NCBI GenBank assembly: GCA_002269645.1
Contig: NIVC01004991.1
Span: forward strand, 1-29,256
DNA: 29,256 nt
DNA from: Macrostomum lignano
Lineage: Eukaryota
Reading direction: 5' to 3'
Shown here: piece by piece, positions 8,635-29,256 of the stretch
How positions within the stretch are numbered: position 1 is the first letter of the stretch
How the letters are laid out: every line of letters starts with the position of its first letter
Notes under the pieces: model-generated
Database searches by the model: none
Told to the model about the DNA's origin: nothing
Seen by the model: only the letters and a program-made list of their open reading frames with translations
Translations under genes and position numbers: made by a program

Positions 8635-8920
8635 TATACTCAGCAACATTGGAAAATTGCCATCACAGAAGATTCCGTCTGTGGTCGCCACTTTTCAAAG
8701 TGTAGGTAAAGTCTCTCAATCTTGCGAGTGACGCAACTTACATGTAGCTACGCCACGCGACAACATTTAGGTTGAGGAATGAAGTGGGGGAATCTCGGTG
8801 TGCGAGGATTAGACGGATTAAAGCTACCCCTCAGTTTTATCGTATCATTTATTTCAGAATTGTCAAAGATAAATGCTCACTGGTGCATATAGTGACGACT
8901 TTTCAATGTTGCTGAGTATA
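8635..8920. mobile_element. 286-bp MITE, Tc1/mariner-like (TA flanks)
   Basis: TATACTCAGCAACATTGGAAA (8635-8655) versus the reverse complement of 8900-8920, TATACTCAGCAACATTGAAAA: 20 of 21 identical, including terminal TA. Confidence 0.85.
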
Positions 8921-9286
8921 CTTAATAGTTATTTATTATTCTATACTGGGGTGGGATATTGGGATATTACAGGTTGTAGCTGTTACAGGGGTGTTTATTT
9001 ATAGTTTAATCCTACTGTTTTGCTACCAAATTGTGACGGGCCTCTTTTGGGGAAATTATACTGCTGCTGTCTAATTTGTTATAAGGGGGGGGGGGCGGGT
9101 CGGGGTTACTGGCTTTTACAAGAATTATTTTGGGAATTTCGTAGGATTTGGGGAGAATATGCAATTTCTACTACTAAAAGGAGTATGCTTTAAAGTTACT
9201 CCTGGTGGCGTGAGTGTCCGAGCGGCAAGACACTATATTTCTACTCAGTCCGGATATCTAAGGAGGGGAAGGGGAATAAGGGCTTC

Positions 9287-9625
9287 GCGGTCGAAAAATC
9301 ACATCGTCGAAAAGCATCCACCATCACAAGCTCGAAAAGTCATAAGCTCGAAAAATCATATCGTCGAAAAGTTTAGCAACCACCATCACAAGCTCGAAAA
9401 CTCACAAGCTCGAAAACTCACATCGTCGAAAACTGATTTAGCAACCACCATCACAAGCTCGAAAAATCATATCGTTGAAAAGTTAAGCAACCACCATCAC
9501 AAGCTCGAAAAATCACATCGTCGAAAACTGATTTAGCAGCCACCATCACAAGCTCGTAAAGTCATAAGCTCGAAAAATCACATCGTCGAAAAGTTTAGCA
9601 ACCACCATCATAAGCTCAAAAAGTC
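9287..9625. repeat. Complex tandem array of cacaagctcgaaaa / cacatcgtcgaaaa / gcaaccaccat modules (probably TE subterminal repeats)
   Basis: Repeated modules visible directly; related aagctcgaaa motifs at about 5155-5200. Explains ORF 9159-9536. Confidence 0.8.
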
Positions 9626-9833
9626 TTAAAGAATTAATTATTTATATTTATATTTATTCATATTTAAAGAATAAAAGTTGCTCTTAGAATAGTCTATGGC
9701 AAAAACTCAAGCCCTACTTATCACAGCTTCACAACAAGAGTAGGCTGGTGTGATTTCAATTCTTGCACCGATTTTTTAAACAAAAATGCTCGAATCGGCA
9801 TTCTGTGTATATTCTGTGATTGTCGACCCACTC

Positions 9834-10000
9834 AGAACAATTTGTGTCGTTGAGCAAGACGCTTAACTCTGCATTGCTTCATTAACTATTAGCTTTAAAA
9901 TGGATGCCAGCATTAGTTAGGGCAGTTGAAAGTGTGTGTCACCCCCAGTCCTTGGACTGACAGCCGTATGCAGCCTTCAGATGCGCTGCGCAAAAGCTGT
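9834..10000 (+). mobile_element. SINE family A copy
   Basis: agaacaatttgtgtcgttgagcaagacgcttaactctgcattgcttca...cccccagtccttggactgacagccgtatgcagccttcagatgcgctgcgcaa matches the reverse complement of 4110-4270. Confidence 0.85.
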
Positions 10001-11754
10001 GGTAAAATCAGGTAATAGAAAGTGGTAAAATCAATTATTAGGGGTATAGGGGTGAAGTTATGTGTGATTATACGAGAGTTGACAAAAAACAAATATACAA
10101 CTTTAAGCGAGAGGGGAGAGAGCGCAATCTGTGTCATACTGCCATAAAAGTCAGAAAAAATAATAATTCTAATAATAATAATAAATAACAATTATTTTCA
10201 TCTGGTATATTGTTTATTATTACAGCTATATCAACATCCATCCTCCATTACACAGCCGAGTGTTTTTCGTTTCAAGCCGTAGCCAGCGGATGAGTTTCAC
10301 TCTCATGGACAGACGCGGAACAAGCATATTTGAGCACTTACTCGTATTCACGTGTAAGCTAAATACGAGTAACATTTTTATTGACTCGGTTGAATTTTTT
10401 ATCGAAGTGTATACAAACTATACTAATGACCCGTGTCCTTAATGAAGTTTTCGTCTTAATAGTCTTAATTTAAGCTTTGTGTCCTCTGTTGCCTCCTTAT
10501 CTTCATTTGTAAAGAATATTAGAATATCCAATTAAGTGAGCCTGTTCAAGTATTTTACTCTTAGCACTGAACTGATCAAATAAAAAATAAGCTCAGATAT
10601 GCAAGCAGATAGCTTAGTAAGTTACTCGTTGCTAGTTAATAAGAAGGTAACGTTCGTTACTTCGTTACCGCTTATCAAAAAATTACCGATATATTGAAAT
10701 TATATTAGTTAAAATGATCATAAAGTTTTTTTGGTAGCAGAAAAAGAAACAAAGCTTATTTTCAATTTCAAGTCAACTAAGGTATCCTATTTTATTTACT
10801 GCTCTACAGATTCGATTAAACGTACAGAAAGAAGCTTGTTTTGCCTACTGAAAGCAGCTAGTAGACTTGTTAGCATCGTGTTTTAATCGATCTCAATCAA
10901 ACGGAAAAGTAACTCTAAAGTAACAAGTACTTATCGCTACTTAGTTTCTGGCACCGATAATAGAATGACTAAGGTATGCCACTCAAAAAATGCGCTCATT
11001 TACTCTCTAAGTATAGCGACAATAGTTTTTGCACTTAAACTTGTAAAACTAATAAATTTTACAAGACTTCTGACTTTCTGTAAGCAGAGTCTCACCAAAC
11101 CCATTAATTGTCCTAGATTCTAAGTGATTTTTTATGAAATCCTAAAGGTCTTAAAGACTGAAGATAGCGCTCTTGATACCAGCAAGGCTGATGAAATTGT
11201 TACCTTATTTTCCTACTATTGTTTTTGTTGACGTTTATTTTCCTAAGAATTTATGTCATAAAATGTTGCTACTTCGTCCATCTCTGATACATGTATACGC
11301 GATTGCGATTTTTATGTATCCATTGATATGTTATACTATATGTTATATGTTATATCAACTCAACAGTGACATGAAAAGTTTTTAGTTCAGACTATTCTGA
11401 ACATTTTTCTTTAAATTTTATTAGTAAGCATTAGTAGCGGAAAGTTAAGTTGATACTATGCTTAGTTTTGTGTTTATGATTTTATTTTATGTCGTAGCTT
11501 AACCTTTTCATGTAACGTTTTTTGCGTCTTGCATGCAGCCTTCTACATCTCTGTCAGATTCTTACAATAAATATGCCGCGCACAGCTGAATGAGTATCTA
11601 CTAAATTCAATAGAAAAATTAATTGGTTCATTTTTGATGTCATTTTTTTTCATATAAAACTAGTATAATACTCGTAATAATAAAAAACTGATTTACCTGA
11701 CCAACTGCCCGGAAAGTGCCCGTCAACATAAGCTCATAAAGTTCATAAGCTCAT

Positions 11755-12040
11755 GAGCCCGAGTAGCCTATGCACAAAAATGACACGTCATTCTGCTCAC
11801 AGTAATACCGGGAAGCTGGGTTTGGCAATAAGAGGGACACAAATTGGACTTAAGAGAACGAGCAAGGGGATGGTTAGGGATTATTATGTCAACCTAAGCT
11901 CATAAAGTAGAGTCCCTAATTATCCCATTGCTTGTTTTTTCCTATCCCAAGTCGAATTTGCATCGCTCTTTTTGCCAAACCTAGCTTCCTAGTGTCATTG
12001 TCAGTAGAATATTATTTGTGTACATAACTTACTCGGGCTC
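11755..12040. mobile_element. Foldback/MITE with long imperfect inverted arms
   Basis: Arm 11755-11880 (gagcccgagta...ggaagctgggtttggcaa...ttaggga) is the imperfect reverse complement of 11913-12040 (tccctaa...ttgccaaacctagcttcc...tactcgggctc). Confidence 0.8.
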
Positions 12041-12505
12041 CACTTTATGATCCTAAGTTAACAGCCCATTTAAAGTGCCAAATGGAAAGATGTGTAAATT
12101 TTTATGCAGCGTTCTAGCCTACTTTTCAAGCTTTGAAGTACGTATAGGTTTTAGTTCAGCCAATTTGCCAAGAAAATGAGCCCACGAGCGTATATTTTGT
12201 CCTTATTAGGTATACAATGTATACGCAGTTTGCTAGGGACGATTTAAAGCCGTTCTTTCTACGTTGTTGATATACGAGCTATTACAACTGCTGTGTAAAG
12301 TAATTTCGATGGCATATGATATAGAAAATTCATAAAGCTGCTGAAGCTTCTTAAATCCAAGTAGTGATGTTTCTTTTGATAGTTATTTTCTCTTTAATAT
12401 TTGGTAGGATTTGTTTATAGATTTCTCTAGCAACTATTGAACACATATGGGTATTAATTTCAATAAATTGAAGGCTAACCGGTTGCTTTAAATTGTTTTC
12501 TTTGC

Positions 12506-14104
12506 ATGCCGAAAATGTCAAGTGAACAGCAAATCTGCATTGCTAGATCCTGCGATCGTCCGGCTGAAGACACGAGTCCATACTCTGGTTTTGCTTTCTG
12601 TCGGCAGCATCTTGCCACTGAGATTCAGCGTCTAGAGAAACGACAACAAGAACTGCTAGATAAGCTTGACAAACTTAGCAACTGTTCAGAAAGACAGGCA
12701 ATGCGTCTTGGTCAACAAGTTTTGATTGTTGAGATGCAGGAGATTACAGACATGTTTGAAGCTGTTCATAATAGACTGCACCAGTGGAAGGATCGGTTGG
12801 TGTCGCATGTGCAAAAGATCCATGACAATATTGCTACCACGCTTAAGGATGTAGACGAGGCCGATGCTTGTAAGCAGGAACTAATGCAGGCTCGGGATTC
12901 GGGACAGCTGCGCAAAGTGATGGAGCTTGTTGTTTCCATGGAATCATTCGCTGATGACGCTATGGACCGATTGCCAGAGCATGAAGAACTTCGAGCCGAA
13001 TTGAAGCAAGATGCTCCCAATCGAATCATTGGCGATGTGTCAGTTGGAGTACAGCAGCTTCAGTTCAAGATCGATCGACATTTCACAGATTTGACACAGC
13101 ACTGTAAGCTTAAAGACATGCCTTCTGATGACTCACCGCAGTGCAATGTGTGCAAGTTCGATAGCACTGTCTCCGAGCTTCCAAGTGGACCTCGGTACAT
13201 AACTTTGTGTCAAAACACGAAAAATTATGCTGCCAACCATACAGGAGTGATTATTCCTGCTAAACAAGCTGATAAGAGAAGTTTAGAACTGCCAGAACAG
13301 TGCTTATTTATAGCATTTGATAGGAACAAGGCGGATTATTTGTTGGTGATATCACTAAACAGACGTGATTCTATCGATGAGCTAAAGTATCGCTGCGAAC
13401 AGTTTAACTGGAGCAAGGACATATATGGCATTCATTGCGACAGCAATCGGCAGCAGCTGTTTATAGCTCAGGATCACGCTGTGACAGTGACAGACCTGTG
13501 TGGCCGAATTGTTAGAGTGGTGACTTCTGATCTGTTCGGTTGGCCTGTTGGAAAGATTTCTGGAATCTCTTGCAACGGAGACAAAGTTTTTGTGCTAGTG
13601 TTGGGCAGCCGCAACCAGAAGGTGCATTCATTTAGCAAGAACTCCGGAAATTTGGAGTCCAGCCTTGATTTAAAAGGCCATTTTGATGGCGACTTGCGCA
13701 AAATCTGCCTGCAAGAGAGCAAGATTTGGCTAGCTGATTGGAAATACCCGAAAGTTTACAAAGTTTGCGGCATTTCTGGGAAGTTAATTGAAACCATTGA
13801 TTGCATTGAATCATGTGTTGGTGATATTAAGAAAACGAAATTTTCGCCAATACACATTTGCACTGATGACAGAGGCCTTTTGTTTGCTAGCCTGATGTCG
13901 GCAAATAGCGTAGAAATTTTTGTTGGAGATTCCGTTATTATTAAGTTTCTGGTAGATTTCAACATCGAAGGCGAAGAAAACGACGACTGCTTTGATCGCC
14001 CGGCAGACATGATCATTTTTAACGACGAGACAAAGAACTGCAAGAAGTTAATAGTTTGCGATTATGCTAACGAGAGGCTCTGTATTTTCTTGCTTTCCAC
14101 TTAA
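12506..14104 (+). CDS. ZnF-coiled coil-beta-propeller paralogue 2 (intact, intronless, 532 aa; may start at ATG 12515); RING-less TRIM-NHL-like architecture
   Basis: Long ATG-initiated ORF with an N-terminal C-x4-C-x15-C-x2-H motif, a helical heptad-like region at about aa 35-190, and a beta-rich C-terminus ending in an NHL-like DRPADMIIF...LIVCDYANERLCIF. Confidence 0.9.
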   Translation: MPKMSSEQQICIARSCDRPAEDTSPYSGFAFCRQHLATEIQRLEKRQQELLDKLDKLSNCSERQAMRLGQQVLIVEMQEITDMFEAVHNRLHQWKDRLVSHVQKIHDNIATTLKDVDEADACKQELMQARDSGQLRKVMELVVSMESFADDAMDRLPEHEELRAELKQDAPNRIIGDVSVGVQQLQFKIDRHFTDLTQHCKLKDMPSDDSPQCNVCKFDSTVSELPSGPRYITLCQNTKNYAANHTGVIIPAKQADKRSLELPEQCLFIAFDRNKADYLLVISLNRRDSIDELKYRCEQFNWSKDIYGIHCDSNRQQLFIAQDHAVTVTDLCGRIVRVVTSDLFGWPVGKISGISCNGDKVFVLVLGSRNQKVHSFSKNSGNLESSLDLKGHFDGDLRKICLQESKIWLADWKYPKVYKVCGISGKLIETIDCIESCVGDIKKTKFSPIHICTDDRGLLFASLMSANSVEIFVGDSVIIKFLVDFNIEGEENDDCFDRPADMIIFNDETKNCKKLIVCDYANERLCIFLLST

Positions 14105-14493
14105 ACCGATGGATCAAGCTTAGCTCAAGTAAAGCGGTTATTGACCGAAGAATGTGAATATCGTAACTCGTCGTTTGTAACAGTTTTCTCAAAACACATT
14201 CTTTTACTTGAAGATATATGTATACCTAATATTTCATTTATAAATTTTATAAATATTTATATTAATCTTAATTTTGGTGCTTGCTTATCTTAAATCTTTT
14301 TAATTGCAAGCAGAATGTTCAATCGCCATAGCGTACAGAATTTTTCACGTTTTTTGCTACGCTGCATTTTTACATATCTATTGTACTTTCAGTACCGCAT
14401 GGCAAGTGTTTGTCGTATTTAACAGTTAAAATTTATTTCTTTATTTATTAGTAATCGTTACACATTGTTTTTTGGTTCCAAGTAGCTCGTACT

Positions 14494-15507
14494 TATACTC
14501 AGCAGCAGTCAAAAGTGCTATCCAACTTCCACTTCTCAATTAAAATTCAACCCACGAGTTTTACGTAACTATGTAGCCAAGTCAAGGGACAGTAACAGGG
14601 TAACAGTCTATCTCAATAGAGTGCTTTATTTTTAGTTTTTTTCGGTAATGTAGGAAAATAGCCAAATCAATTTGCAAAATTACCGATTCGGAGTTACCAA
14701 AGACCAAGTTAAGTGCATCATAGTTAATTTAAGTAGCAGAATCGTTTGGTTCTGTATACTTTTTATGCCCATGTACTCTGCCAAGCGCAGGCAGTCTTCT
14801 CTTTGCTCAAGTGCGTCTTTCAATCGCTGCTTAATCCTCAGCGGATATTCTGGCTCGGGCGGCAGCCATTTACTGTTGAGTTGGCATTGTCCCACCAGGT
14901 TTGGCCTTTTGTATCCATCGTTGTCACTGCGCAACAGATTAGCGCTCTTATTGGCTAATTTACAATTTGAACTGGTGTTTGCACTTGACTTGGTTAGATA
15001 ATTAACTGGTTTTTGACCTTGCATTGTTATAGTATCCTCAGGAGAATTTTTATAACAAAAAACATCAGCCCTAAAGGCCAGCTATATCGCCTAAGATATC
15101 TGTATCTCCTTTGAGCTTTGGCATCAACGCCTCCCTTTAGGCCATTATTTAATCCTATTTCTCCCTTCGATCTACCTTTGGCTTGGCCTACCAAAAACTT
15201 CAAAATGAACCTTCTAAATGAAACTTCCAAATATCTCATTAACACTCCCTAAACCGCCACAGCATTTCAGCAATTCCCCCATAAGCTTTGACATGTCAGG
15301 GATCCTCCCTGAGAGCCTCAGCAGATTTGGCTATTTGCCAGATAAACTGAATTTTATGCATTTGGGATGTGGAACTTAAGTTGGATATAGTACTACGTGA
15401 CCGAAAATGCCTATAAAGTGTGTACAGTTTTTGTAAGCTATCTAAAGTGCAAAATTTTCGACTTGCGTGAAGGGTAGCACTAGCACTTTTGACTATTGCT
15501 GAATATA
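14494..15507 (-). mobile_element. Internally deleted Tc1/mariner (IS630-like) DNA transposon, about 1014 bp
   Basis: TIR TATACTCAGCAGCAGTCAAAAGTGCTA (14494-14520) versus the reverse complement of 15481-15507: 24 of 27 identical, with TA flanks. Contains ORF 14680-15024. Confidence 0.75.
14680..15024 (-). pseudogene. 114-aa ORF, probable N-terminal HTH remnant of a Tc1/IS630-type transposase
   Basis: ATG in ACAATG context. YPLRIKQRLKDALEQREDCLRLAEYMGIK resembles recalled transposase HTH segments (Y..D.R.RI..A.E..E.Y..IA..LGV). No DDE domain follows. Lies inside the TIR pair, with AATAAA on the minus strand at 14625-14630. Confidence 0.5.
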
Positions 15508-16588
15508 CGCGCCAGAAAATTCAAGATTTTCTGTCGTTGTGGTGCTACTAAACTTAAGACACAATAAGTACGTCGTAAAATATTAGACTCATTTACTCGC
15601 CATATATTTTTGTAGGGTCCCACCTCGAGAACAAACTCTATGTGCCTTGCGTCCTATTGTCATGCAACTATATAGTCCATTGTGTAATAATTTACGCATG
15701 CTCAACATCTGCATCGTAGCTCTCGTCATTGAGGCACAGTGCTTTTCGAAAGCTGTAAATCTTACACTGCGTCCCATTGCTAGCCGTGTGTGCAGGCCTA
15801 AGTTGTCTCGTCTTGTTTGTGGGGTTGTTTGAAAGGCTCATTTACAGGTATATAACTTTAAGTGAGTTGTGCGTACTTTTACGCTTAGAATTCACTCGTA
15901 ATTAAAATAAAGCAAGTGTATCTTGCTTCTCTTGCTTGTATTTTTTGTGTGCTTATTATTGTAAAATTAATTCTTTTGGCGCTTTTGCAGCATGTTTAAT
16001 AATAATTTGATAAGTTTAATACCGAGTGAAAAAGTTTGCTTAAAAGTTCGGAATGCTTGTGCTTTTATTTTGATTCAACTCCAAACTTCTTTAGCTGTGT
16101 ATTTCAACATCTAGCTAGGTTATTGCAATATTAAATGAAGTTTTAGTATATGTTTGCCTTTATAATAGATCGTCCACTGAAAAGTTGCAAAGATTTACTT
16201 TGATACCTTAACTAATTGTAGCTCGTATCTAACTGATAGCTAAATAGAACTTCCAATGTGTGTACTAAACTTGTGTGCTTCGAATGGTTAAGACCAAAAG
16301 GACTAAAAACTGAGAAACTGTTTGTGGCCTATTGCAAGGTCTAAACTCACTTTAAGACTCTAATGTACGAGCTCGTAGAAGCACGCAGGAGTTCCCTGAA
16401 ATTGTCTACTAGCTAGCCGCCCTGACCCCTGATCCTTGAGATGAGATACTCGTAGAGCTGGTAGAGTTGCAGTGTGGTGACAATATAAGATGTCGCCTAC
16501 TGATTACTTGTACTTGCATTGGTTCAGACTAATTACAGAAAAATGATTGAATTTTTGTTTATATTCATGCCGGACGCTAACCGCAGCC

Positions 16589-17650
16589 ATGTCCAGCGAT
16601 ACCCACCGCATGTGCATTGTCAGATCCTGTTACCAAGCGTCTGATAGCGTGAGTCCTTATTCCGGATTCGCTCTGTGTCAGCAACATCTTGGTAGCGATC
16701 TTGAACGGCTTGAACAGAGAGAAACTGAAGTTTTAAATAAACTGAATACTGTCGCGGCTAATTCGGAGAAGCAAACTTTTCGACTAGAACAGCAAGCGAT
16801 TCAAATAGAAATGCAAGAAATTGACGACATGTTTGAATCTGTGCAGGCGAGGCTCCAGCTGTGGAAAGAGCAGCTGGTTTCCAGTGTCCAACAGATCCAC
16901 GATGCATTTGCTAGTAGGCTGAGAGATGTCGCCGATGCTGAGCATTGTCTGAAAGACATTCATTCGGCACGGTCCAACGGGAAGTTGCGCAAAGTGATGA
17001 AGCTAATACTGTCTGTTGAAAGCTTTGCCGATGAAGCCGTCGATAGATCGGCAATTTTTGACGACTTTCGAGCAAGGCTTCGTGAAATTACAATGGAACG
17101 CGATAAGGATAATGACTCTGATGACGATGATGGTGATGAAGATGAAGACGAGTCTTCGAAAACTACTATCTATCGATGCATTGGTGATGTGTCATCTGAG
17201 GTGCAGATGCTACAATCACTGATTGACAAGCATATGCATAGTGTAATGGAGTATTGCCAAATTGACGGCGAATCGCCAGACAAGCCAGTTTGTCCGCCTT
17301 TAAAGCAGTCAATTACTCTTCCAGGAGAGCCGCGTTATCTAACTCTGTGTACGAACACAAGTGGATACGTGTGCAACATGAATGACTGCGTGGTTTCGCT
17401 CAAGTCTGTTGCGAACGCCTCTTATCGAGAATTACCAATGCCTACTATCTTTGTTGCGCTAAGGCCAGGTAGCAGTTCTTTACTGCTGGGCGTTTCTTTT
17501 AACATGCGTCGCAAGTTTAAACTAATCTGCGAAAAATTCGACTGGAACAAAGCTATTACCGGCCTTCATTGTGACAATTTGCGTCAGAGATTATTTTTAG
17601 CTCAGGAGCACGCAGTGACAGTGTCAGATTTGACAGATTTGTGTTTTTGA
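16589..17650 (+). pseudogene. ZnF-coiled coil-beta-propeller paralogue 3, C-terminally truncated (353 aa)
   Basis: ATG 16589 (MSSDTH); same zinc-finger motif and coiled coil; acidic insert DNDSDDDDGDEDEDE. Homology to copy 2 ends at AVTVSDLTDLC, where copy 2 continues for about 200 aa. Confidence 0.85.
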
Positions 17651-20404
17651 ATTGTATAATCCTATACTTCCATCTTAGGAATACGTCGAAAAGCATTAGT
17701 TTATCGACGCCTAGTTGCTTTAGCTTTGTTTGTTAGTGTTTGAAGTCTAGCTTTACACTGTATACTCGTACTTTTATTAAACCTAAATATGATACTTGTA
17801 CTTCGAAGCAGTGCCCTGCTGTTCCTTGACTCTGGTTGTTGTTTTTTTATTCACATTATCTGCTTCTAAGTTTAGTCCGCCAAAAATATCTAATTAGCGA
17901 AGATACTAAACAAACAAAACAGTACTTGCGATTCTGAAAAAGATATTTAAGGCGGAATGGTTAATAAAAAGACGACTGAATGATTAATTGTTAATCGTTT
18001 ATAAAAAGTATTTTGTTATAACAAGTTAAACACACTTATTTTGATAAAAATTGTCGAACCAAGCGCCATCTGAGTGCCATTAAAAGCGCGCGAGTATGAT
18101 AATTTCTGAACTTGTTTTTAGAAAACCACAGCTAACTTTCTTTAAATCTTCCAGCTAAGCGTCATGTACATCCTGGCCTATTCTATGTTGAAATATCCTT
18201 TGAATTTTACTAATAGGTTTCATTAATACCAATTCAGGCATTATATCATTATTGTTGATTTTTAGTATGAGTCGAAATCATAAGCTGCTGTATCTTGCGT
18301 TTGCTATGCATACTTGCTTATTTACGAGCGTATTTGTTTTTTTGTTGATCGAAAACTGTATTTTTCGCTCTTTTAGAATTAGACTATACTAACTATGGGG
18401 GGTAACCTAATAATTAAGCGTTTCCTATTTATTTTTGTTTGCTAATTAATCTTGTGTAAATTTTAATTATGGGCCCGATTTGTTAGTTTTGATTGCTACA
18501 GTACATGCTTCTATTACTGTAGCATTTAAATACATTGTGACGGGGGACTTGTGGAAAACTTCATTGTTTTACTATCATTTTTACTATTAGTAGACTACTA
18601 CATAAGTGTATCATATTTTGTATGAATTCTGTGTACATTCATTGAATCGGCTTTTATATGTCGGCAAGTGATGAATTTTTAACAAATCAATAATTTTGCC
18701 CAGCGCCCATCGTAACTCTCAGCCAATTACAATTCGCTGTATCATCTATCGTTTTATATTAACTGTTCGTTTTTCGTCGCTACTCTAAATAAAATAAAAT
18801 AAACTTGGCCAACTAAGCAAGCAAAATATATCAATTCAATTGAATATTGGACTGCGCTATACTTGCATTTTTCTTCGGTCTTGTTCTGCCAAGGACTGCC
18901 AGATTAAATTGTCACAACATATATGATTTCAACGTACGTTTTTTCACATTTTTACTGTGCACTCAAGTGCTATTACAAAGATATAGTCACTTACATGGCA
19001 GTTACATGTAAGTTTTTGCTTTGTTTAACTTTTTTACTAAACAGTTAGATAAAAATGTGCACGTACAGTTCAGTCCAGATCGATCTTGGCTCGCGCGTCC
19101 GCTCTGCAGCTTTTACCTGGGCTTCACGCTCGTACATGTAGCTATAACTCAATTCTTACCTAATTCATGCCACAGAACGACTAAATAAATAGAAATACAA
19201 GGATCATATTAAAGGATCTGAATAGGGCCGCATATATCAAATAAGCCCGCAGAAAGCACTCAGATTTTGATTGATACATCGACCTACATGTAGATTGATA
19301 CGCGTACTTTTCAACTATACAGCTGCATAAAAATGGACCAGGAAGGTGATTTAATGTGAACTTATACCGTGCCCACAACTACTGAGGAAAAAACAGCATT
19401 CTTTCTGTTTAATTACTCGTGTACATGTACAATATAAACAGCTAGTAGTTAAAGTCTGCAGAGCTCTGCTCAGTGCTTACGGTCCCAATGCCTAAATGAG
19501 TGTTAACATCACCGATTCCATTAAAAGTGTAGGAATGGGAATAGGAATAGGACTAGTAATAAGGAATTTAGTCAGAATTATTGCTTAATCAATTATTGCA
19601 CAGCTCCCCACTGCATTTACATGATCCATGCATATGGCGACGCCAAATGATGGAGCTGAGTATTTGTTACTCGCCACACTGCACCTCACCGATCGCGTAC
19701 ATTATACATGTGTAAGCACCACTGCAGTGGCAGTTTTAAAAACATTACGGTAATGCCGCCATTTTCATGCAGTTAGCACTACAAATACTCTGACATTGAA
19801 ACTTATTTGATAGTATTGTAATTTTACAAGTCGAAATTAATTATTATTGCTAGTATTATAATGCATGAGTATTCTAAATGTCAAACTCTAAAGTTGGTTT
19901 ACAAAATTACTGTTTTGTTAAAGTTTGTTTTTTCTTTAAGGGGTTTTTAATTTTCTTTATTTCTTATAAAATCGTGTTTCCTGTAAAGCGTTAGCAAGTG
20001 AATAGGGTAGGAAAGAATTGGAGTAGTGCACATTGTGCTTGCGCAAGCAGTGTATTTGTATTATAGGCTTCTTGTCGGGATAATTTAATTTGCCTATAAA
20101 AACTCTTTATTTGACCTATCTAGTCTATTGTTTACCGAGTAAATTAATTAGGACATACACCGACACCGAGTCACCGACTTACTACCTATATTGAACTTGA
20201 ATGAACATTAGGCCTAATTAAAATAGTAAAATATTCAATAAATCCCATATACTTAATCAAACGTAACGACGAACGGGATAATTTAAGCTGCACCTTAAAT
20301 TTTTGGCTTGGTGTTTTCAGTTCTAGGATGGTTTTGTAGGATGAGTTTTTCTTTGTGACCAGTGACCACTGACCACCCAGTTAAAAGCCTTTCTGACTAG
20401 TCTA

Positions 20405-20539
20405 ATGCCTGAGCAAGTTGTTCGAATTGGTGTGACAGATTTTGTCACATATACATATGAAGATTTGCAGGATGCAACCAACAGTAGATTCATTCAAAAA
20501 ATATTACAACTAAGGAAAACTGTGGATTCAATTTCTTAT
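20405..20539 (+). CDS. ASAP1: ASAP-family ArfGAP, first coding exon (N-terminus/BAR domain)
   Basis: MPEQVVRIGVTDFVTYTYEDLQDATNSRFIQKILQLRKTVDSISY resembles recalled ASAP1 MPDQISVSEFIAETTEDYNSPTTSSFTTRLHNCRNTVTLLEE. GTATGT donor at 20540. Likely acceptor(s) at 20319-20326 imply an upstream UTR exon. Confidence 0.85.
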
Positions 20540-20720
20540 GTATGTCAATTTTTTTATTGCCTAATTTTTTATATACAACCCATTTTACCTTTTTGACTAT
20601 TGCCTAAGCAATAAATAGGGCCCTATCTTTTTATGACAGTATGACATGAATCCTTATTAATATTCGGCTAGAGCCTAGGTATGTTACAAATTTGAATATC
20701 AAAAGAATATGCTATTATAT

Positions 20721-21207
20721 GCCTGGATGGAATTCTTGCAGAAAAATCACAACGCGTTATGCAATTGAGCGAAAAAAATGCGATTTTGCATAAAAAAATC
20801 CAGAAAAAATGTGTTGCAGAATTTCAGACAAAATTTCTAATTCTTAATATATGCAAAAGTGCGCTTGAGATATTGGATTTTGCAAAAGATAATCTTACCA
20901 GCTAATATCACAAAGAAAAATAAAAAGTAAAAACTAAATAAGGCACAAAAGTAAAAATTCAAAAAAAATTCTATAAAAAGTAGAAACTCGTAACATTCTC
21001 TAACATTCATATTTGGACAAAAATTCAAATTACTACATTATCTTAGAATGCATTTTTCATTATTGTCTTTCGTTATTTTGTTATTTCGTTATTTTGCAAT
21101 GTGCTAAGTACCAAAATAAAAAATGCGACCAATAAAAAATATTTTGCGTGCCATAAAAAATCGCATAATTCCATTTGACTTAAGAAATACAAGAATTCCA
21201 TCCTGGC
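20721..21207. mobile_element. 487-bp MITE in ASAP intron 1 with an apparent 6-bp TSD
   Basis: GCCTGGATGGAATTCTTG (20721-20738) versus the reverse complement of 21190-21207, GCCAGGATGGAATTCTTG: 17 of 18 identical. ttatat flanks at 20715-20720 and 21208-21213. Confidence 0.8.
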
Positions 21208-21764
21208 TTATATGCTTATTTTATTATACGCAATTTTGAATTTTTCAAAAAAAGAATTCTTGCATAAAAGTTATTATGCCTCTATGTGTGCTTTCAAATT
21301 TGTCTACAGGTGTATGTTGAAAATGGGCCTACCTGCTTGCATACTTTAAAAATATATATATAGTACTTATGTACATTTGTACAAAAAGCTATTTGCTACA
21401 TAATTATAATGCATAGGCCTACAATACAGTTATAGTAATAGTAACTTCTATATTTCTTCAGTTTACCTTGTGCTCTTGATTGTTTACTTTCTTATGAAAT
21501 TTAGTCTAGACTTCTCTCTCTTCCTATTTTCATTCTGATTAGTTTTCACTTTAACTTCCTAGCCTTTTCTATCCTTTTATTCCATTTGTATAGCTAGCCC
21601 CCTTCTTTTTGTATGCTCAAATTAAAAGCCAACTTCTCAGTTCTTAATGCCCTAAACCCTAATTACTTCTTTTATTTTTAACCAAAATGTCAATATTCAA
21701 ATCTTAATCTATTTTAAATCTTTACCCTACATCAAAGTGACTAATTAATATTTCAATTATCAAT

Positions 21765-22575
21765 TTCCAATTCTAATTCAAATTATATATTCTATTCTTA
21801 ACATTAACTAGAGATGTTCCAAAATTTTGATTTAAATTTAAATTTTCTAAAATTTGCATTTTTAAAGCAAATTTTAATTTCTAAATAATTTGGAAATCAA
21901 AATTTTAGAAGTGCCTACTTCCAAACTTCTTATCTGATGTTAGTTTTTTTAGAACTTTGTTACTGCTTTCATTAGTGATATTATTACATTTTTTACATGT
22001 AAAACTATTTGAATTTGTTAAAACTGTTCCATACATATAGAACATACATATAGGGCTGTATGCAGAAAGCTCTGTCTAGGGTAGTCCGGTCTTGAAAAGC
22101 TAGTCTGGACTTGGATTTGGTATGCAGAAATGCAAAGTTAGACCGGTCTACTATAGCAGAACTAGGGTAGCTGGACCATAGACTATAGACTGAACTACCC
22201 AAGTCTGGACTAGCTAGTCTAGACTAAGCTTTCTGCATACGACCCATAGTTTGTGGAACTGTAAATTTTTCAATTCTAATTCAAATTATATATTCTATTC
22301 TTGACATTAACTAGAGATGTTCTAAAATTTCCATTTAAATTTAAATTTTCTAAAAGTTGCATTTTTGAAGCAAATTTTAATTTCTAAAGAATTTGGAAAT
22401 CAAAATTTTAGAAGTGCCTACTTCCAAACTTCTTATCTGATGTTAGTTTTTTTAGAACTTCATTACTGCTTTTATTGGTGATATTATTACATTTTTTACA
22501 TGTAAAACTATTTGAATTTGTTAAAACTGTTCCATACATATAGAACATACATATAGTTTGTGGAACTAAATTTTT
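21765..22575. repeat. Local tandem duplication of a ~305-bp intronic segment (copy 1 about 21765-22267 including a MITE; copy 2 about 22268-22575)
   Basis: Near-identical sequence from caattctaattcaaattatatattc to atagtttgtggaact; about 9 differing sites by eye. Confidence 0.95.
22053..22245. mobile_element. 193-bp MITE with a 3-bp TSD (PIF/Harbinger-Tourist-like)
   Basis: GGGCTGTATGCAGAAAGCT versus the reverse complement of the right end, GGGTCGTATGCAGAAAGCT: 17 of 19 identical. ATA duplicated at 22050-22052 and 22246-22248. The empty site is preserved in duplicate copy 2. Confidence 0.92.
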
Positions 22576-24336
22576 GTAAATTTTGTTGCACTTTAAAGCT
22601 GTAAAAGCATCTGCTGATATATTGCACATTTTTGCATAATACAATACAATAATGCATATGTACATTTACCATACATGTACATGCATTATTGTTTACACAA
22701 TCTCAGTTTATTGCTAGTCATGCAGTGATACATGTATATTTTAACTAAATTTTATACATGTACAACTGAGTACACGTAGTTTTTGCATTGAAAAAAGTTT
22801 TTGCATTTAAAGTGGCAATGAGGGATTCTACTTATTTAGTGGCTAAAAAAACTAACTTCTGCTAAACATACATATATTTTGTTTTGCATGAGCAGTAAAT
22901 TTAAAGTAAAAAAGTGAGTGTTGGTTGTACTAAACTTTGTTTTTCTGAATTTTGATTTCAACTATATAGCTGCAGTATTAATTAATTATTTAAAATTGTA
23001 TTAATTTGACAAATAAATAAAATACAACTTAAGAAAAGAAAATTAAGCAATTATTTATACCTATTAAGAAGATAGTATAAAGGGGTTCTATAGTGCCAGC
23101 TGGTTATTAGGGATTGCTAATTGAGTTTGTTGATAGATGGGACCTAGTGCTATAGTATAGTTAGTCTATAGTGCTGTGGGTGATATTGCTAGTATATGTA
23201 TCTTAGCTACACAAATGATCTGATTGGATAGCTGTCTATGAGCCCATGTTGGCATAGTGTAGATTGGTTTTTTATAAGATATTATGTCATTTTTGGGAAC
23301 AGTAAGGCTGCTAATGGGTTAGCTACATTTATTATATAATAGCAACAGCAATGCAATGAGATTAAGAAGTAATGATAGTAGATAGTGGATAATAGTGCTT
23401 TCAGGCATCTCTATTAATAGCATAAAAGCATGTAAAACATTCACAAAGAGGCTGCTCAACATCTCATTGGACTATTTGTGGAAGGGTTTTTGTTGGTTAG
23501 TGAATAAGAGCAAGGCAATGGTTCTTTTAGTAGGATAATTAATGGAAATTAGATTGGGGATTCAAACAAAGAAAAAGAAGAGGCATGATTTGTATCATTG
23601 TCATCATCACCATATATTTATAGATTTGTAAACGGTTTCTAGAGTTTTCTAGAAAGATTGAATGCATCCTAACAAACTGGTTTTGACTTTTAGAAATCTA
23701 ACGAAATTTTGAAAAAGTTATTAAAGTATGATATAGTAGCAGTATTCATAGAATATTTACTATGTACTAACAAGGCATTTAGGAACAATAGTCTATAATT
23801 TCTCAGTAATATTGAGTATCTATTTATTTATTAATATAAATAAGAGCTTATCTAAGCCATATAATAATAGGCTCTTAGCATAAAAAATGTTTGCTAAACA
23901 AATATTAAAAAATAAAATAATTTAATTATTGCCATTAGTATTTTTTGTCCATTTTTTAAATCTTGTTATTCTGTTTGAATATATAAAGTATATATAAATT
24001 TCAAAACTGTACACAGAATCTTGTTTCAAGCACAAAGAATTGTTATTTGAGCAAATAAAAATCTAAGTTATTTTAACTGGACTCTAAGCTACAATACTAT
24101 ATAACCTCCTGAGTAAATAGTCTTGTCTTCTCTGAACTTTGTCATGCTAATAAATATTTTTATAATTTAATTTTTGTTTTAATACCAAGGGTAAGATGAT
24201 AGTGTATCATCTTTAACATGTATATATATACTCTTAACAGATTCTAAAATAGTATTTCCTCAATTCAAGACAAAAAATTCAAAGTAGAATACAAACAAAA
24301 TACAAATTTTAAATAAAAAATACCTCTCATTAATAG

Positions 24337-24409
24337 GACTTGGACTTAGACAAAGCAGCACTGAACAAGGTTCGCAAATCAGTGAAAGCTGTTTATGGAT
24401 CTGGAAAAT
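24337..24409 (+). CDS. ASAP1: ASAP coding exon 2
   Basis: tAG then DLDLDKAALNKVRKSVKAVYGSGK plus T, then GTAAGT at 24410. Resembles ALDQDRTALQKVKKSVKAIYNSG. Not in the ORF track. Confidence 0.92.
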
Positions 24410-24487
24410 GTAAGTTATATTTTGTAATTTAACTACTGGCATTATTTCTCGCATAGTAACACTTGCACCCCTGTCTTGCACCTGCAG

Positions 24488-24633
24488 CGCACATTCAAAG
24501 CGAAAGCGATCTGTCTAATTTGCTAGCCGAGCTGGGCAACTATGCCATCGACGAGGGCGCCGACTCTGTTGGCAGCGCGCTGTCCAAATTCTCTGTTGTT
24601 ACCAAGGAAACGAATTCTTATTTTGCTAATTTG
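24488..24633 (+). CDS. ASAP1: ASAP coding exon 3
   Basis: cAG then (S)HIQSESDLSNLLAELGNYAIDEGADSVGSALSKFSVVTKETNSYFANL, then GTATGC at 24634. Phase matches exon 2. Confidence 0.92.
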
Positions 24634-24678
24634 GTATGCTCTGCTGCTGGCGGTTGATGTCACTTTTTTAGTGTTTCT

Positions 24679-24725
24679 TAGATGGATATATATATAGATA
24701 GATAGATAGAAGGATAGATAGATAA

Positions 24726-24775
<50 letters not shown>

Positions 24776-24781
24776 TGATAA

Positions 24782-24870
<89 letters not shown>

Positions 24871-24917
24871 AGGATTAGAAGGGTAGATAGATAGATGGAT
24901 GGATAGATAGATAGATG

Positions 24918-24982
<65 letters not shown>
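24679..24982. repeat. (GATA)n microsatellite, about 300 bp, filling most of ASAP intron 3
   Basis: Directly visible, with a few GGAT/GAAG/AATA interruptions. Confidence 0.98.
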
Positions 24983-25051
24983 GTTCATTGAAAGAAAAAC
25001 AATGATGAAACTCAACAAACCGAAAAATCATTAACCCGCCCCCTCCACCAG

Positions 25052-25243
25052 ATGCAAAACCTGTCCAACATAGTGCTAAGCCCGTTGGAAACTTTCATCA
25101 AAGTGGAAATGAAGTCCGACATGAAGAAAGGCTTCGACAAGGCATTGAAAGAATACGAATCAAAATTCGACAAGATTCGTAAAGAAAAGATTCAAGCCGC
25201 TAAAGAGGCTGGTCACACCAAGACAGACGTGTCAATGACCGAG
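25052..25243 (+). CDS. ASAP1: ASAP coding exon 4
   Basis: cAG then MQNLSNIVLSPLETFIKVEMKSDMKKGFDKALKEYESKFDKIRKEK...SMTE, then GTAAAC at 25244. Resembles GDLKKPFDKAWKDYETKFTKIEKEK. Confidence 0.93.
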
Positions 25244-25299
25244 GTAAACAATAGATTGGACCCATTTGTCTATTTTCTTGACTTAGAAATTGAAGCTAG

Positions 25300-25620
25300 T
25301 CAATAAAAGTAGATTAATATCCACTGAATATCGACATCGTCTCACAGCAACCAGGGCTGAAGCAATGCTGCCCATTCTACCGATCTTAAGCACATTCTTG
25401 AGCACGCGCTCACACACACGCTCACATAAGGTGTACAACAGCTCCGGCTTTCTAATCGTTCAAGGCGTGTACACTCTCTGTGCTTTGGCGGTTGGCCCAA
25501 ATTTGCTGTGAATCGCACGGCAACACTAATCTCCATTTTCTTACACACAAGCCCCGTATAAATGTGGGCCGCTCACAGAATCGAACCACGGGCCGTGTTG
25601 CAAGAGACTCAGACTCGTTT
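25300..25620 (-). mobile_element. Candidate tRNA-derived SINE, family B, in ASAP intron 4
   Basis: GC-richer block. The minus strand begins GTCTCTTGCAACACGGCCCGTGGTTCGATTC, similar to the family A head GACTCGCAAC...GGTTCGATTC with a B-box. No A-box and no second copy in the window. Confidence 0.45.
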
Positions 25621-25823
25621 ATTGAAATAAAAAAGACAAAAGCAAAGACAAACATTTAATTAATATTCATTCTTCTTAGACAACTGCTATATAAGTTCCG
25701 TGCTTAAAAAATAATTCTAGTTGTATATATGTGCACTCTAAACATGAAAACTTTATTAATATCTATAACTTGCTTACTATAAAATGAAATGATCCGATAC
25801 TAAAAAAAAACACTGCCTTGCAG

Positions 25824-25877
25824 ATTCAAGAGGAACTTGAACGGGAACGGCGGTCCTTGCAGCTGCAACTGTGCGAG
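25824..25877 (+). CDS. ASAP1: ASAP coding exon 5
   Basis: ttgcAG then IQEELERERRSLQLQLCE, then GTTTGT at 25878. Resembles IAEEMEKERRLFQLQMCE. Not in the ORF track. Confidence 0.9.
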
Positions 25878-26529
25878 GTTTGTTCTAGTTTAATAAAACA
25901 TACCTGTTACTGTTTCTTGATACTTTTGTTCACCTCTATCAAACGCTGTTTTTTAAATACTAGAGATAATATACAGCATAGTTCTAAATAAGTGTTTTTT
26001 CACTCTGCTCATTTTTTTCTCGCAATATGGTCCAAGAAACGGGTCTATGCAGGTTTATTTTGCGTGCAAGTAAATTGCTTTGGACAGACAGATAATAATA
26101 GTAGTAGGAATAATAAGAATGCCAGCCACAATAATGTAAAATATCCAATAAGAATGGTAAGTAAGTTTGTTACTCAGTTTAGAAAGAGTAGATATAATAC
26201 AGGATCGAGTGGTCTCTCGAGTTGCTATGGGAATGAGGAAAAATAAGAGATATTTGTACAGAAAAAATAGTCGACAAAGCAAATTATTAAAAGCAGAGCG
26301 GCACCGAGTGTACGATAAAAATATGTGCTTTTATACATTGGTTGTAACTTGGCAGGTTGCTTTATTCTCAGATCATCAAAAGTTCGGGCCCGTTAGGCGT
26401 GGAAGCTAGATTGGCATTGAGACGGAGAGTGTATGCGTATACAATAATAATAATATAAATTGCAGACAAGCTGGTCTGGCGTTTGATAAGAAGCTGCCTA
26501 TTGATATTGCAATAATATTAATTTAGATC

Positions 26530-26715
26530 TTAGAATAATAATAATAATAATGGATTAGAATGTGGAGCTGCTTTACCGAAAGAAATGTCGTTATAGAATG
26601 CAAGATATTGTGTGCTCAAAATGGATCTCACATGCATCTGTCTCGTCTTCTTGTTGCGTCTTTCGAATGTGTCGAATGTCTCTGTCTGCATTATGTTAGA
26701 TGAATTATTTAACAT
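26530..26715 (-). CDS. Putative 61-aa orphan ORF (ORF C)
   Basis: ATG 2 nt after the ORF B stop; MLNNSSNIMQTETFDTFERRNKKTRQMHV...; ends in a (TTA)n run. Could be 3' UTR only. Confidence 0.25.
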   Translation of the reverse strand: MLNNSSNIMQTETFDTFERRNKKTRQMHVRSILSTQYLAFYNDISFGKAAPHSNPLLLLLF

Positions 26716-26717
26716 TA

Positions 26718-27794
26718 TTAAATAAACTCCGTACCCTCTAGCGGTGTGTCGAATACGCGGACCATTTGGTAGCACTTTGGTCGCCTAACATTGCCGCCTC
26801 CTACGTGTAGAATCTGGGCCTTGCCTTTTGATAATCGGCGCTTACCGATTCGTCTGCCAGTTTTATTTCCAGGCCGGCGTTGCCTTGTCGCCGATCTAGC
26901 GGAGCTTGCATTAGTTTGGCTTCCAGTTGCAACAGCAGCCTCTTGCGTTGGTACTATTGGAAGTTGTTCGTCTTCATCGGCGTCTTCTATCGTTTCGAAT
27001 GCCGTATCGGTTGTTGTTGTTATTGGCGCAATTGGTTTGTTTGTCGCTGTCCGTGTTCTTGCTGCTTTTACTTCTGCTTCTGCTGCTTGGCGTTTGAGGT
27101 CCTCTAAAATGCGGCTGTAGATATCGGCTAGAGCTGCATCCGCTGCGTTGCCTTCTAGTACGCTGCGCTCTCTTAACTGAGCAATCTGGTTTGCTAGCGT
27201 CTCTGCTACGTCTTCGTTCACATTTTGGTGGTCCTGTTCGACTTCTTGTGCCGCCTGCCAGTGCTGGGCTTCCTGTTCCAGCTCGTCTAGTCCGACTTTG
27301 TCTTCCGCTTCGGAAACTGACTCGCACCGGATTAAGTCGTGCTCCGCAGCTATCTCATCCTCCTGCTCGGTCTCTTCGTTAGCGACGAATTTCTCTTCGT
27401 TGGCGTCTTCTGTTAGATTTTTGCGCGGGCGTCGCTTGATCTTGACGAAGCTGACGTGGCCGGGTTTAACTGAATCGCACAGTTGAGGACTGTCGCCTTC
27501 GTTGACGAACAGATACGGGCTGTCCGAGACAGATACTAGTTGTTCAACTTGCTGCTGCTGCTGCTGGTTGGCGTCGGACGATATGTTTATATTGCTAGCA
27601 TTTTTAGCATTACGACGAGCGTCGCGGTTTTTGTTGTGCTTCAACAGGGCTTGCGGATCGGCGGTTGGCGGCTTGCCTAGTCTCAGGTTTAGGTAAACGC
27701 TCTTGATGTCAGCAAGTTTCTCCATCTCGCTACGGATCATGTAGTTTGACGCTTTCTCGCTCCGATTCAGGTCCAGGATTACTCCCAACCGCAC
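26718..27794 (-). CDS. Orphan ORF B (acidic middle, basic Arg/Lys-rich tail); first ATG at 27740, or the frameshifted continuation of ORF A
   Basis: Frame open from 27842 to 26718; GC/CpG-rich with coding-like composition; the annotated start is GTG. No family recognised. Confidence 0.7.
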   Translation of the reverse strand: MRLGVILDLNRSEKASNYMIRSEMEKLADIKSVYLNLRLGKPPTADPQALLKHNKNRDARRNAKNASNINISSDANQQQQQQVEQLVSVSDSPYLFVNEGDSPQLCDSVKPGHVSFVKIKRRPRKNLTEDANEEKFVANEETEQEDEIAAEHDLIRCESVSEAEDKVGLDELEQEAQHWQAAQEVEQDHQNVNEDVAETLANQIAQLRERSVLEGNAADAALADIYSRILEDLKRQAAEAEVKAARTRTATNKPIAPITTTTDTAFETIEDADEDEQLPIVPTQEAAVATGSQTNASSARSATRQRRPGNKTGRRIGKRRLSKGKAQILHVGGGNVRRPKCYQMVRVFDTPLEGTEFI

Positions 27795-29017
27795 GTCTGC
27801 GAACGTGTTCTGAAGATTGGATTTAGTTGGAAGTCGATCTCGTCATCAAAGCTATATGGCGGAAATTCAGCTTCCAAAAAGCGAATCAGCTGTCTGCTGT
27901 GCAACAAGACGTGATATAAAATTCCAATCAGTCGCTTTATAGTCCTAGCTAGAATAAGACGCTTGTTATTTGCCTTCTTAGTCGGATCAACGTGCGCATG
28001 TTTCTGCTTTTTATCGCCCTTCTGCATCTTATTTAACTTGTCAATATTGTCGAATTGCTGCTGTAGCAGATTTAACAGTAGCACGGCAGCGTTGCGCGCG
28101 TCGCGATTCTGCATTTCCACCAGCTTTTTCTTGGCCTTGACCGCATCCGGTGGCAAATTGTTGCCTCCTTTGCCTTTCTTCTTTTTGGGCGGCGGTTCAA
28201 TTACAAATAAGCCGCGCTTGATGTACACGTCTACAGTGTCTAGTAGCGGTTGTAAAGGCGTCTTGTTAGCCACTTTGGCGCCAGTTTTCAGCGCGTGCAG
28301 CAGCACTCTAGTGGCTTCGGACGCATACGGCCCTGGGTCAGAGGCCGAGTTCTTGCCTTTCTTAGCCGCGGCGGCATTGTTATTAGCGTTGGCGCCGGGG
28401 TCCTCAGCCTCGTAGCCCGCATCGTAGTCTTGAGCTTGGGCCATCACAATCTGCGGATTATAACCGTCGGCAATCATCTCTTTGATACAATTTCGAACCT
28501 CTTCGTAGCGCACTCTGGTCTGCTGATAGCTGGCGTAATCTTCGGCGATTTCCATTAACGATTTCGTGCCAATCATTCGAGCACCGTGCGGCAGGTTATC
28601 CACTTCGATTAGTCCGGTTTGAACGCGTTGATTTTCATTTTTCGGATTAACAATCGACATTGGCAAGCGTTGGAATTTGTAAAACGCCGGATCAAAAGTC
28701 ATGTTATGTACGAGGCGAGCTAGCGGCAACAATGGTCGTTCGTTCATCAGCCACAGACAGTAATCTAACCAGTCCGTGAAGTAGTAGGCTCGACGTTCGT
28801 ATCTCCGTCTTGCTGGCATGCAGATTGGCTCTAGTGCCTCCCACTTGTTCATTAGCATGTCGGGCACGTATTCGTAGCAACCGCTTCGTAGAACGATCAC
28901 CGACAGCGGGTAGGCGTGAAAATCTCCAGTGACCGTGTCTTGGACGTGAGTGGCGTACTGCGGCTCCTTCAACGTGTAAAGCGCATCTCCTATGGGATCT
29001 CGATAAGCCAGAGCCAT
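27779..29017 (-). CDS. Orphan ORF A (412 aa from ATG 29017), antisense within the presumed ASAP intron 5
   Basis: AAAATGG Kozak context at 29017, and a possible in-frame acceptor CAG at 29035-29033. Globular-looking N-terminal half, NLS-like PPPKKKKGK, helical C-terminal part. No family recognised. Confidence 0.8.
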   Translation of the reverse strand: MALAYRDPIGDALYTLKEPQYATHVQDTVTGDFHAYPLSVIVLRSGCYEYVPDMLMNKWEALEPICMPARRRYERRAYYFTDWLDYCLWLMNERPLLPLARLVHNMTFDPAFYKFQRLPMSIVNPKNENQRVQTGLIEVDNLPHGARMIGTKSLMEIAEDYASYQQTRVRYEEVRNCIKEMIADGYNPQIVMAQAQDYDAGYEAEDPGANANNNAAAAKKGKNSASDPGPYASEATRVLLHALKTGAKVANKTPLQPLLDTVDVYIKRGLFVIEPPPKKKKGKGGNNLPPDAVKAKKKLVEMQNRDARNAAVLLLNLLQQQFDNIDKLNKMQKGDKKQKHAHVDPTKKANNKRLILARTIKRLIGILYHVLLHSRQLIRFLEAEFPPYSFDDEIDFQLNPIFRTRSQTCGWE

Positions 29018-29256
29018 TTTCACCACGTCGACCTGTGATTATTGGGGAATTGCAGTTGTGAATATTTTAATTTAGACTTTGATATCGAGTTAGTTACCTG
29101 TGTTAACAACTATTCAATTATCGTGAGTGTCAATAATGACCTACTTGTCAATAAGTTTATTTCCATGACACCCCATTCTCTCTATCTTATGCTCCTCGAT
29201 TCAATAGATGATTAAATTTAAGTTTTAAAAAGAGACTTACACTCTTCAGATAGAAG

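Follow-up and report, generated by a model that had tools for sequence, protein, structure and literature searches.

An antisense block of open reading frames in an ASAP intron of Macrostomum lignano is most probably one ordinary two-exon host gene

Genes nested on the opposite strand within an intron are a described arrangement in animals, in which a complete gene lies inside a single intron of a larger gene and has exons of that host on both sides. The locus considered here conforms to this arrangement. It is found at the right-hand end of a stretch of 29,256 nucleotides (nt) from Macrostomum lignano (assembly GCA_002269645.1, contig NIVC01004991.1, positions 1 to 29,256 of the forward strand), to which, at its full length, we refer as the window, and it appears as a block of open reading frames (ORFs) antisense to an ASAP gene (BAR-PH-ArfGAP-ANK-SH3). 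We assign the block to a gene that is annotated already, BOX15_Mlig022898g2 (Mlig022898 for short). Compared to the nested genes of other animals, Mlig022898 fills a large part of a short intron (about 75% of 3.9 kb), its ATG lies at a distance of only 224 nt from the next host exon, ASAP exon 6, and the arrangement has been retained in an old paralogous pair. The other described systems to be considered are the Polintons and the endogenous fragments of DNA viruses. Their likeness to Mlig022898 is superficial and consists of long ORFs, basic stretches and the lack of a recognisable domain, whereas Mlig022898 comes without hallmark genes, terminal repeats or a target-site duplication and has a spliceosomal intron, a host-type composition and host neighbours. 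More specifically, the Polinton/Maverick gene set of protein-primed PolB, RVE integrase, double and single jelly-roll capsids, FtsK-type ATPase and adenain protease is not found at this locus.

With a probability that we put at roughly 0.9, the block represents exon 2 and the 3' untranslated region (UTR) of one ordinary two-exon nuclear gene of M. lignano, Mlig022898, which is antisense to ASAP and lies wholly inside ASAP intron 5. This figure applies to the identity and the structure of the gene, and does not extend to its inferred function. The product of the gene, PAA60398.1 (UniRef100_A0A267EFW2), is a protein of 877 amino acids (aa) that carries the annotation "hypothetical protein" in assembly GCA_002269645.1. 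A phmmer search against 1.84 billion representatives retrieved nine relatives, with PAA60398.1 on top (99% identity, E=3.7e-273). Moreover, the DNA of the window between 16719 and 29256 is 99.9% identical across 12.5 kb to contig NIVC01002156.1 of the same assembly, which holds the locus of PAA60398.1 (L001, in the following the GenBank copy) and extends 10.3 kb past the right end of the window. When mapped onto the GenBank copy, the protein occupies two exons, the second of which comprises 771 codons without interruption. The near-identical DNA and protein, the matching two-exon structure, the 208-nt intron and the nesting within ASAP confirm that the two sequences represent the same locus. 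The gene is therefore not new: it is the annotated, uncharacterised Mlig022898g2 in an ordinary nested arrangement.

The gene runs along the minus strand of the window. Only the last 16 nt of exon 1 are included (29241..29256), which encode ...FYLKS and read CTTCTATCTGAAGAGT-GTAAGT. The remainder of the exon (aa 1-106) is located off the right edge, and residues 1-106 of PAA60398.1 map to the GenBank copy from base 10001. The AT-rich intron 1 (29033..29240; 208 nt, GTAAGT...CACAG, GC content 0.33) is followed by exon 2 (26718..29032), which encodes aa 107-877 and the stop codon and includes the two larger ORFs, A and B. The putative 3' UTR (26362..26717) extends to the first AATAAA past the stop (26362-26367), where we infer the transcript to end, and contains a third ORF, C. 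An earlier note on this DNA, made from the sequence alone, had called the coding block intronless and had also pointed to an AG acceptor upstream of it. The acceptor is real: it forms the end of the 208-nt GT-AG intron that joins exon 2 to exon 1, and the block is accordingly not intronless.

ORF A (27779-29026, minus strand; 415 aa from a GTG and 412 aa from the ATG at 29017) contains the motif PPPKKKKGK and overlaps by 16 nt, in a different frame, with ORF B (26718-27794, minus strand; 358 aa), which ends in the basic tail RRPGNKTGRRIGKRRLSKGK. The translation of frame A matches PAA60398.1 for 405 aa (residues 107-511) and that of frame B matches it across all 358 aa (residues 520-877), in both cases with 100% identity. 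Over the approximately 2.3 kb of exon 2, the sole difference between the window and the GenBank copy consists of a 1-nt indel within a run of three bases; substitutions and stops are absent. The identity in two frames and this lone difference imply that the exon is interrupted once in the window copy, by a single frameshift. Indeed, exon 2 constitutes a single open frame in the GenBank copy as well as in both sister copies (L009 and L010), and the alignments with the paralogues cross the A/B junction without a break. ORF A and ORF B are thus one reading frame of one 2.3-kb exon. Their codon periodicity is that of normal coding sequence (GC content at codon positions 1/2/3 of 0.56/0.36/0.57 for ORF A and 0.62/0.40/0.52 for ORF B). 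A programmed frameshift or a short intron that would link A to B was considered and is ruled out, as the GenBank copy, both sisters and all paralogues read straight through. The ATG at 29017, which had been proposed as a start codon in Kozak context, is the internal Met113 of the 877-aa protein.

ORF C (listed as 26530-26775, minus strand) begins in its ATG form of 61 aa 2 nt past the stop of ORF B. It shows no codon periodicity (0.37/0.38/0.37), and an ORF of at least 61 aa arose in 218 of 2000 shuffles of the 3' flank (11%). At the paralogous loci a counterpart was sought and none was found, and between the sister copies ORF C diverges more than the coding sequence does. ORF C is a chance, non-coding ORF in the 3' UTR. 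The impression of tightly packed ORFs therefore has three sources: a difference of one base, the chance ORF C in the UTR and the edge of the window, which cuts off exon 1. The length of ORF A, the overlap, the PPPKKKKGK motif and the basic tail that the earlier note had given are all correct, whereas its division into three genes does not hold.

The single-base difference is probably an assembly artefact, i.e. a consensus error of the long reads, and there is a smaller chance that it represents a real, young allele. Considering the latter, the window copy could be a genuinely frameshifted, recently inactivated or truncated Mlig022898 that encodes only the first ~520 aa and is one of several redundant copies in a neopolyploid. 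The frameshift is indeed present in the sequence of the window, the existence of three near-identical copies of the locus in M. lignano implies that one could decay without cost, and some of the other differences between window and GenBank are substitutions, so that the two do not derive from the same consensus. Nevertheless, not one substitution separates the 2.3-kb exon from the intact GenBank copy, and the change concerns 1 nt in a short homopolymer and has eight similar counterparts of 1 nt scattered through the remaining ~10 kb of the alignment, a pattern typical of consensus errors in long reads. Furthermore, each of the three copies in GenBank is intact, and purifying selection acts on them. 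Between them we counted 13 synonymous and 6 nonsynonymous variable codons (pN/pS 0.10-0.17; binomial P=2.4e-5 versus neutrality), and although two indel events have shortened one of the sister copies by 6 nt (2 codons), this copy has kept the open frame and encodes 875 aa. A decaying copy in the window is for these reasons unlikely.

The nesting can be followed on both sides of the gene. The GenBank model of ASAP encodes 1263 aa, spans positions 1-19156 of the GenBank copy on the strand opposite to Mlig022898 and flanks the nested gene on both sides. Its product has precomputed Pfam matches to BAR_3, PH, ArfGap, Ank_2 (weak) and SH3_1/2/9, and displays the complete series of features of an ASAP-type ArfGAP: BAR, PH, ArfGAP, ankyrin and a C-terminal SH3. 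The upper end of the host gene, position 19156, corresponds to position ~20405 of the window, where the ATG of exon 1 is located. The upstream ASAP exons occupy approximately 20405..25210 of the plus strand, with BAR-domain exons at ~24496-24645 and ~25049-25210, and are collinear with those of a paralogous locus. Exon 5 (25823..25878, plus strand; BAR domain, ...IQEELERERRSLQLQLCE), with the acceptor ttgcag and a donor GT at 25879, forms the upstream edge of the host intron. Of this intron of ~3.9 kb, the part within the window covers 25879..29256 (plus strand). The donor after 25878 is as it had been noted before, and, also in agreement, no ASAP exon after exon 5 was found within the window. 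Exon 6 (FFIKANDVKTKKRSGLMQYLIDYYTAQM, ttttcag...gtgagag) is located at ~9690-9776 of the GenBank copy, ~0.5 kb past the end of the window, and exon 6 and those after it, which encode the end of the BAR domain, the PH and ArfGAP domains and the ankyrin repeats, can be read directly on the ASAP strand. The absence of downstream ASAP exons had been named as an observation that would speak against nesting, and those exons are present. All three copies of the locus in M. lignano share the identical nesting. The whole of Mlig022898 lies in one host intron with ASAP exons on either side, which confirms the nesting, and of the origins suggested in the earlier note that of an orphan nested host gene is the one that agrees with this two-exon structure.

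The composition of the block fits an exon of the host genome. The ORF block has a GC content of 0.49 and an observed/expected CpG ratio (CpG o/e) of 1.26, against 0.38 and 0.88 for the window as a whole; in the ASAP introns at 21-24 kb the CpG o/e amounts to 0.1-0.4. The sharp contrast with the ASAP introns that had been reported is thus present. It is not special to the block, however, as the ASAP exons (GC content 0.50-0.62, CpG o/e 0.9-1.3) are equally CpG-rich and resemble the nested exon, so that the contrast is one of exon versus intron only.

In M. lignano, the family to which the nested gene belongs is made up of seven or more paralogue groups: Mlig022898, Mlig032244, Mlig011744, Mlig009405, Mlig028909, Mlig014962 and the locus of UniRef A0A1I8IJ07. 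Transcript-like Logan contigs of the family are also present. The phmmer matches to the eight other representatives range from E 5e-74 to 4.8e-4. The family has an N-terminal domain in common (22-45% identity; invariant Y66, Q68, D71, P73, Y103, D143, W170, R182 and D193), followed by a helical middle with invariant D417, N420 and L482 (the D..N motif). The C-terminal halves of the paralogues cannot be aligned to that of Mlig022898, and most paralogues are not nested. They also have more introns, namely 2-4, except for Mlig014962 (L012/L013, 10001-11848), the most divergent M. lignano paralogue, which encodes 615 aa and is intronless, unlike the other members. The position of the first intron, after ...YL(K/R)S, is common to Mlig022898, Mlig009405, Mlig032244 and Mlig011744, with exon 1 ending at aa 106-111.

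Mlig009405 (~40% identical; L002/L003 10001-12939, versus 10001-12842 in the GenBank copy of Mlig022898) is likewise nested antisense, and its host is a paralogous BAR-PH-ArfGap gene: it occupies the homologous BAR-domain intron, and the exons of this host are collinear with those of the ASAP locus on both flanks. This implies that host and guest were duplicated as a unit long ago and that the nesting is older than the duplication. Mlig032244 and Mlig011744 each adjoin Ribosomal_L22 genes, and Mlig028909 and Mlig014962 are surrounded by Na_Ca_ex, RING and KY-type genes. Taken together, the comparisons show a flatworm-restricted, intron-bearing family that duplicates along with neighbouring host genes and is under purifying selection.

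The UniRef names given to members of the family are mutually inconsistent (Integrase catalytic, Bromo, MPN, ANK_REP_REGION, TPR_REGION and Fungal_trans, for the entries A0A1I8JGZ8, A0A1I8HFS5, A0A1I8JAF2, A0A1I8IJ07, A0A1I8HFF2 and A0A1I8IHA4), and we discarded these domain names since none of them was reproduced by Pfam. One further protein model (P0023) is a mis-fused gene model that includes an antisense translation of ArfGAP exons.

The shared intron position and the shared nesting also bear on the possibility that Mlig022898 is a retrogene, derived through processing from a paralogue with introns and inserted into the ASAP intron. Exon 2 does provide 2.3 kb of uninterrupted coding sequence where paralogues have 2-4 introns, and a 28-nt direct repeat surrounds the ORF block. 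A processed copy would nevertheless have to have retained the conserved first intron of the family; the 3' end lacks a poly(A) tract, and the position of Mlig009405, in the corresponding intron of the paralogous host, places the nesting before the duplication. A retrogene is therefore very improbable, and the long exon 2 of the host gene is explained by partial intron loss. The direct repeat itself (26500-26527 and 29049-29076, AT-rich) has 20 of its 28 positions matching and brackets the ORF block almost exactly. However, its 5' copy is situated inside intron 1, so that the resemblance of the two copies is accidental and does not represent a target-site duplication.

A search for repeats in 24000-29256 found no inverted repeats that bracket the block, in agreement with the earlier note, which had seen no terminal inverted repeats, long terminal repeats or target-site duplication. 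What surrounds the family loci retrieved (L001-L005 and L009-L013) are genes of the host, namely ASAP, Ribosomal_L22, dNK, Na_H_Exchanger, Na_Ca_ex and RING, and no gene for polB, a capsid, an integrase or a packaging ATPase was found next to them. The earlier suggestion of an endogenous DNA virus or a Polinton/Maverick-like fragment in the ASAP intron, or of a gene domesticated from one, has only indirect arguments on its side, namely the dense coding, the basic segments that resemble nuclear localisation signals (NLS), the lack of a recognisable domain, a cluster member of 875 aa named 'Integrase catalytic domain-containing protein' in UniRef and a KDZ transposase gene 9 kb from one copy of a paralogue, but it is scarcely credible and the weakest of the alternatives, given that the member named 'integrase' has 0 Pfam families and the other members have none either, that a spliceosomal intron is present at a position common to the paralogues, that the paralogous loci have host neighbours in common and not element genes, that terminal repeats and target-site duplications are lacking, that the composition equals that of host exons and that the copies are under purifying selection. 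A Foldseek comparison of the full-length structural model with BFVD also yielded no match at E<=0.001 (best E 0.037, TM-scores 0.06-0.12), a negative that is not strong by itself as the model is a modest one. Finally, the earlier note had itself held that clear eukaryotic relatives would speak against a viral origin, and such relatives exist in the form of the M. lignano paralogues and of a planarian homologue reported in a published table (PMC5816591).

For the host gene Mlig022898, sequence and predicted structure offer some indications of the nature of the product. The full-length AlphaFold2 (AF2) model, based on an alignment of 8 sequences, has a mean predicted local distance difference test score (pLDDT) of 57; it is confident at residues ~25-135, 345-555 and 690-770, and disordered at 556-689 and 771-877. 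The model of the N-terminal domain (10 sequences; pLDDT 73, predicted template modelling score 0.75) displays three to four strand-strand-helix-helix units. Foldseek found no match in the PDB at E<=0.001 for either model (best E for the N-terminal domain 0.9). Sequence searches of the PDB with ORF A and with a family profile gave nothing meaningful, Pfam detected no family in ORFs A, B and C nor in 14 family members, and a search of NCBIfam returned nothing, so that the earlier failure to recognise a domain is borne out. The repeated strand-helix-helix units and the FH..A..L motifs brought up ankyrin repeats as a candidate for the N-terminal domain. The candidate was rejected, as Foldseek against the PDB yielded no ankyrin and no ANK profile matched: Pfam at E<=10 on 10 N-terminal domains gave no Ank family and no match at all. 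No signal peptide or transmembrane segment was detected in the Mlig022898 protein. Along the chain the helical middle is basic (net charge +15), the next regions are acidic, and the tail is basic with several K/R clusters.

From these features the protein would be composed of a conserved N-terminal alpha/beta domain of ~200 aa without a detectable relative, a basic helical middle with the invariant D..N motif, an acidic region that is disordered or forms a coiled coil, and a basic tail in which several clusters resemble an NLS. Its expression would be driven by a promoter of its own, or would make use of a spliced-leader acceptor, within the 224 nt between the nested ATG and ASAP exon 6. We tentatively suggest that the product might not be an enzyme but a soluble intracellular, probably nuclear, protein with a binding or scaffolding role, which may act in proliferating cells.

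The link with proliferating cells comes from a paralogue. In Supplementary Table 2 of PMC5816591, Mlig032244.g1 is listed as trans-spliced and depleted upon irradiation (log fold change -2.0 to -3.0, false discovery rate down to 1e-81), as enriched in S/G2/M cells and as a member of the class 'Neoblast, stringent'. The same source places it in the conservation class 'flatworms' and lists a homologue in Schmidtea (E=1e-20). Flatworm-specific transcript clusters make up 14 of the 489 stringent-neoblast clusters of M. lignano, Mlig032244 among them (PMC5816591), and within the family neoblast enrichment is documented there for this member only. The family may therefore matter to the stem-cell biology of flatworms. 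No mention of dd_Smes_v1_1986 was found in the literature. At L004 7637-14128, Mlig032244.g1 and the deoxynucleoside kinase (TK2-like) gene upstream of it correspond to the transcript clusters 18137.0 and 18137.1, both of which appear in that table as trans-spliced and 'Neoblast, stringent'. The two neighbours may be co-regulated.

A bolder proposal would be that flatworms alone invented the family, that its N-terminal fold is a new one and that it has a role in neoblasts as proliferating stem cells; its antisense nesting in the same BAR-domain intron of two anciently diverged ASAP-type ArfGAP genes would then have been kept by a transcriptional coupling of host and guest, with the guest ATG at a mere 224 nt from a host exon. 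We consider this proposal unlikely.

Several points weigh against the interpretation presented here. The functional assignment combines sequence features with data on one paralogue at ~45% identity, and the AF2 models were built on 8-10 sequences. An expression record for Mlig022898 was sought in full texts and supplements, including part of the table of PMC5816591, and none was found; the planarian homologue is known here only through the published BLAST table (PMC5816591). The taxonomic range of the family is poorly bounded: word-indexed protein searches recovered at most 3 family proteins, missed even the 99%-identical PAA60398.1 and gave nothing for the alignment of the N-terminal domain, so that their negatives say little on the distribution. 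And the choice between an artefact, which is the most likely, and a real allele at the indel site was made by comparing assembled sequences.

As a candidate relic of a virus or a mobile element the block is without significance, as it belongs to an annotated host gene. It does provide a worked example of the way in which a one-base assembly indel and a window edge can make a single exon resemble a packed multi-gene block. The identical nesting in a host intron at two old paralogous loci constitutes a small datum on the stability of nested gene pairs through duplication. Further interest resides in the orphan N-terminal domain of a family that has one neoblast-enriched member.

Scans of the window for Rfam families and transfer RNAs gave nothing. 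Elsewhere in the window, three tandem paralogous ORFs of another orphan protein are present on the plus strand at 6507-8233, 12506-14104 and 16547-17650, with no Pfam family above threshold. The N-terminus of this protein is Cys/His-rich, with the pattern C..R.C....SP[YF]SGF..C..HL. The first copy is split in two overlapping ORFs (6507-7190 and 7094-8233), and the third stops early in comparison with the middle copy of 532 aa, for which short introns or more single-base indels could be responsible. Selenophosphate-synthetase-like exons (AIRS and AIRS_C; 2234-4071, plus strand) flank a 33-nt tandem repeat of 11.8 copies at 3143-3528 that is open in several frames. Within the ASAP introns, a (TAGA)n microsatellite of ~76 copies at 24679-24982 is the source of spurious 'SIYLSIYL' ORFs. 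In the first of these introns, which is very AT-rich (CpG o/e 0.1-0.4), two segments of ~290 nt (21764-22053 and 22267-22556), 503 nt apart and ~96% identical, seem to represent either a local duplication or members of a short repeat family.

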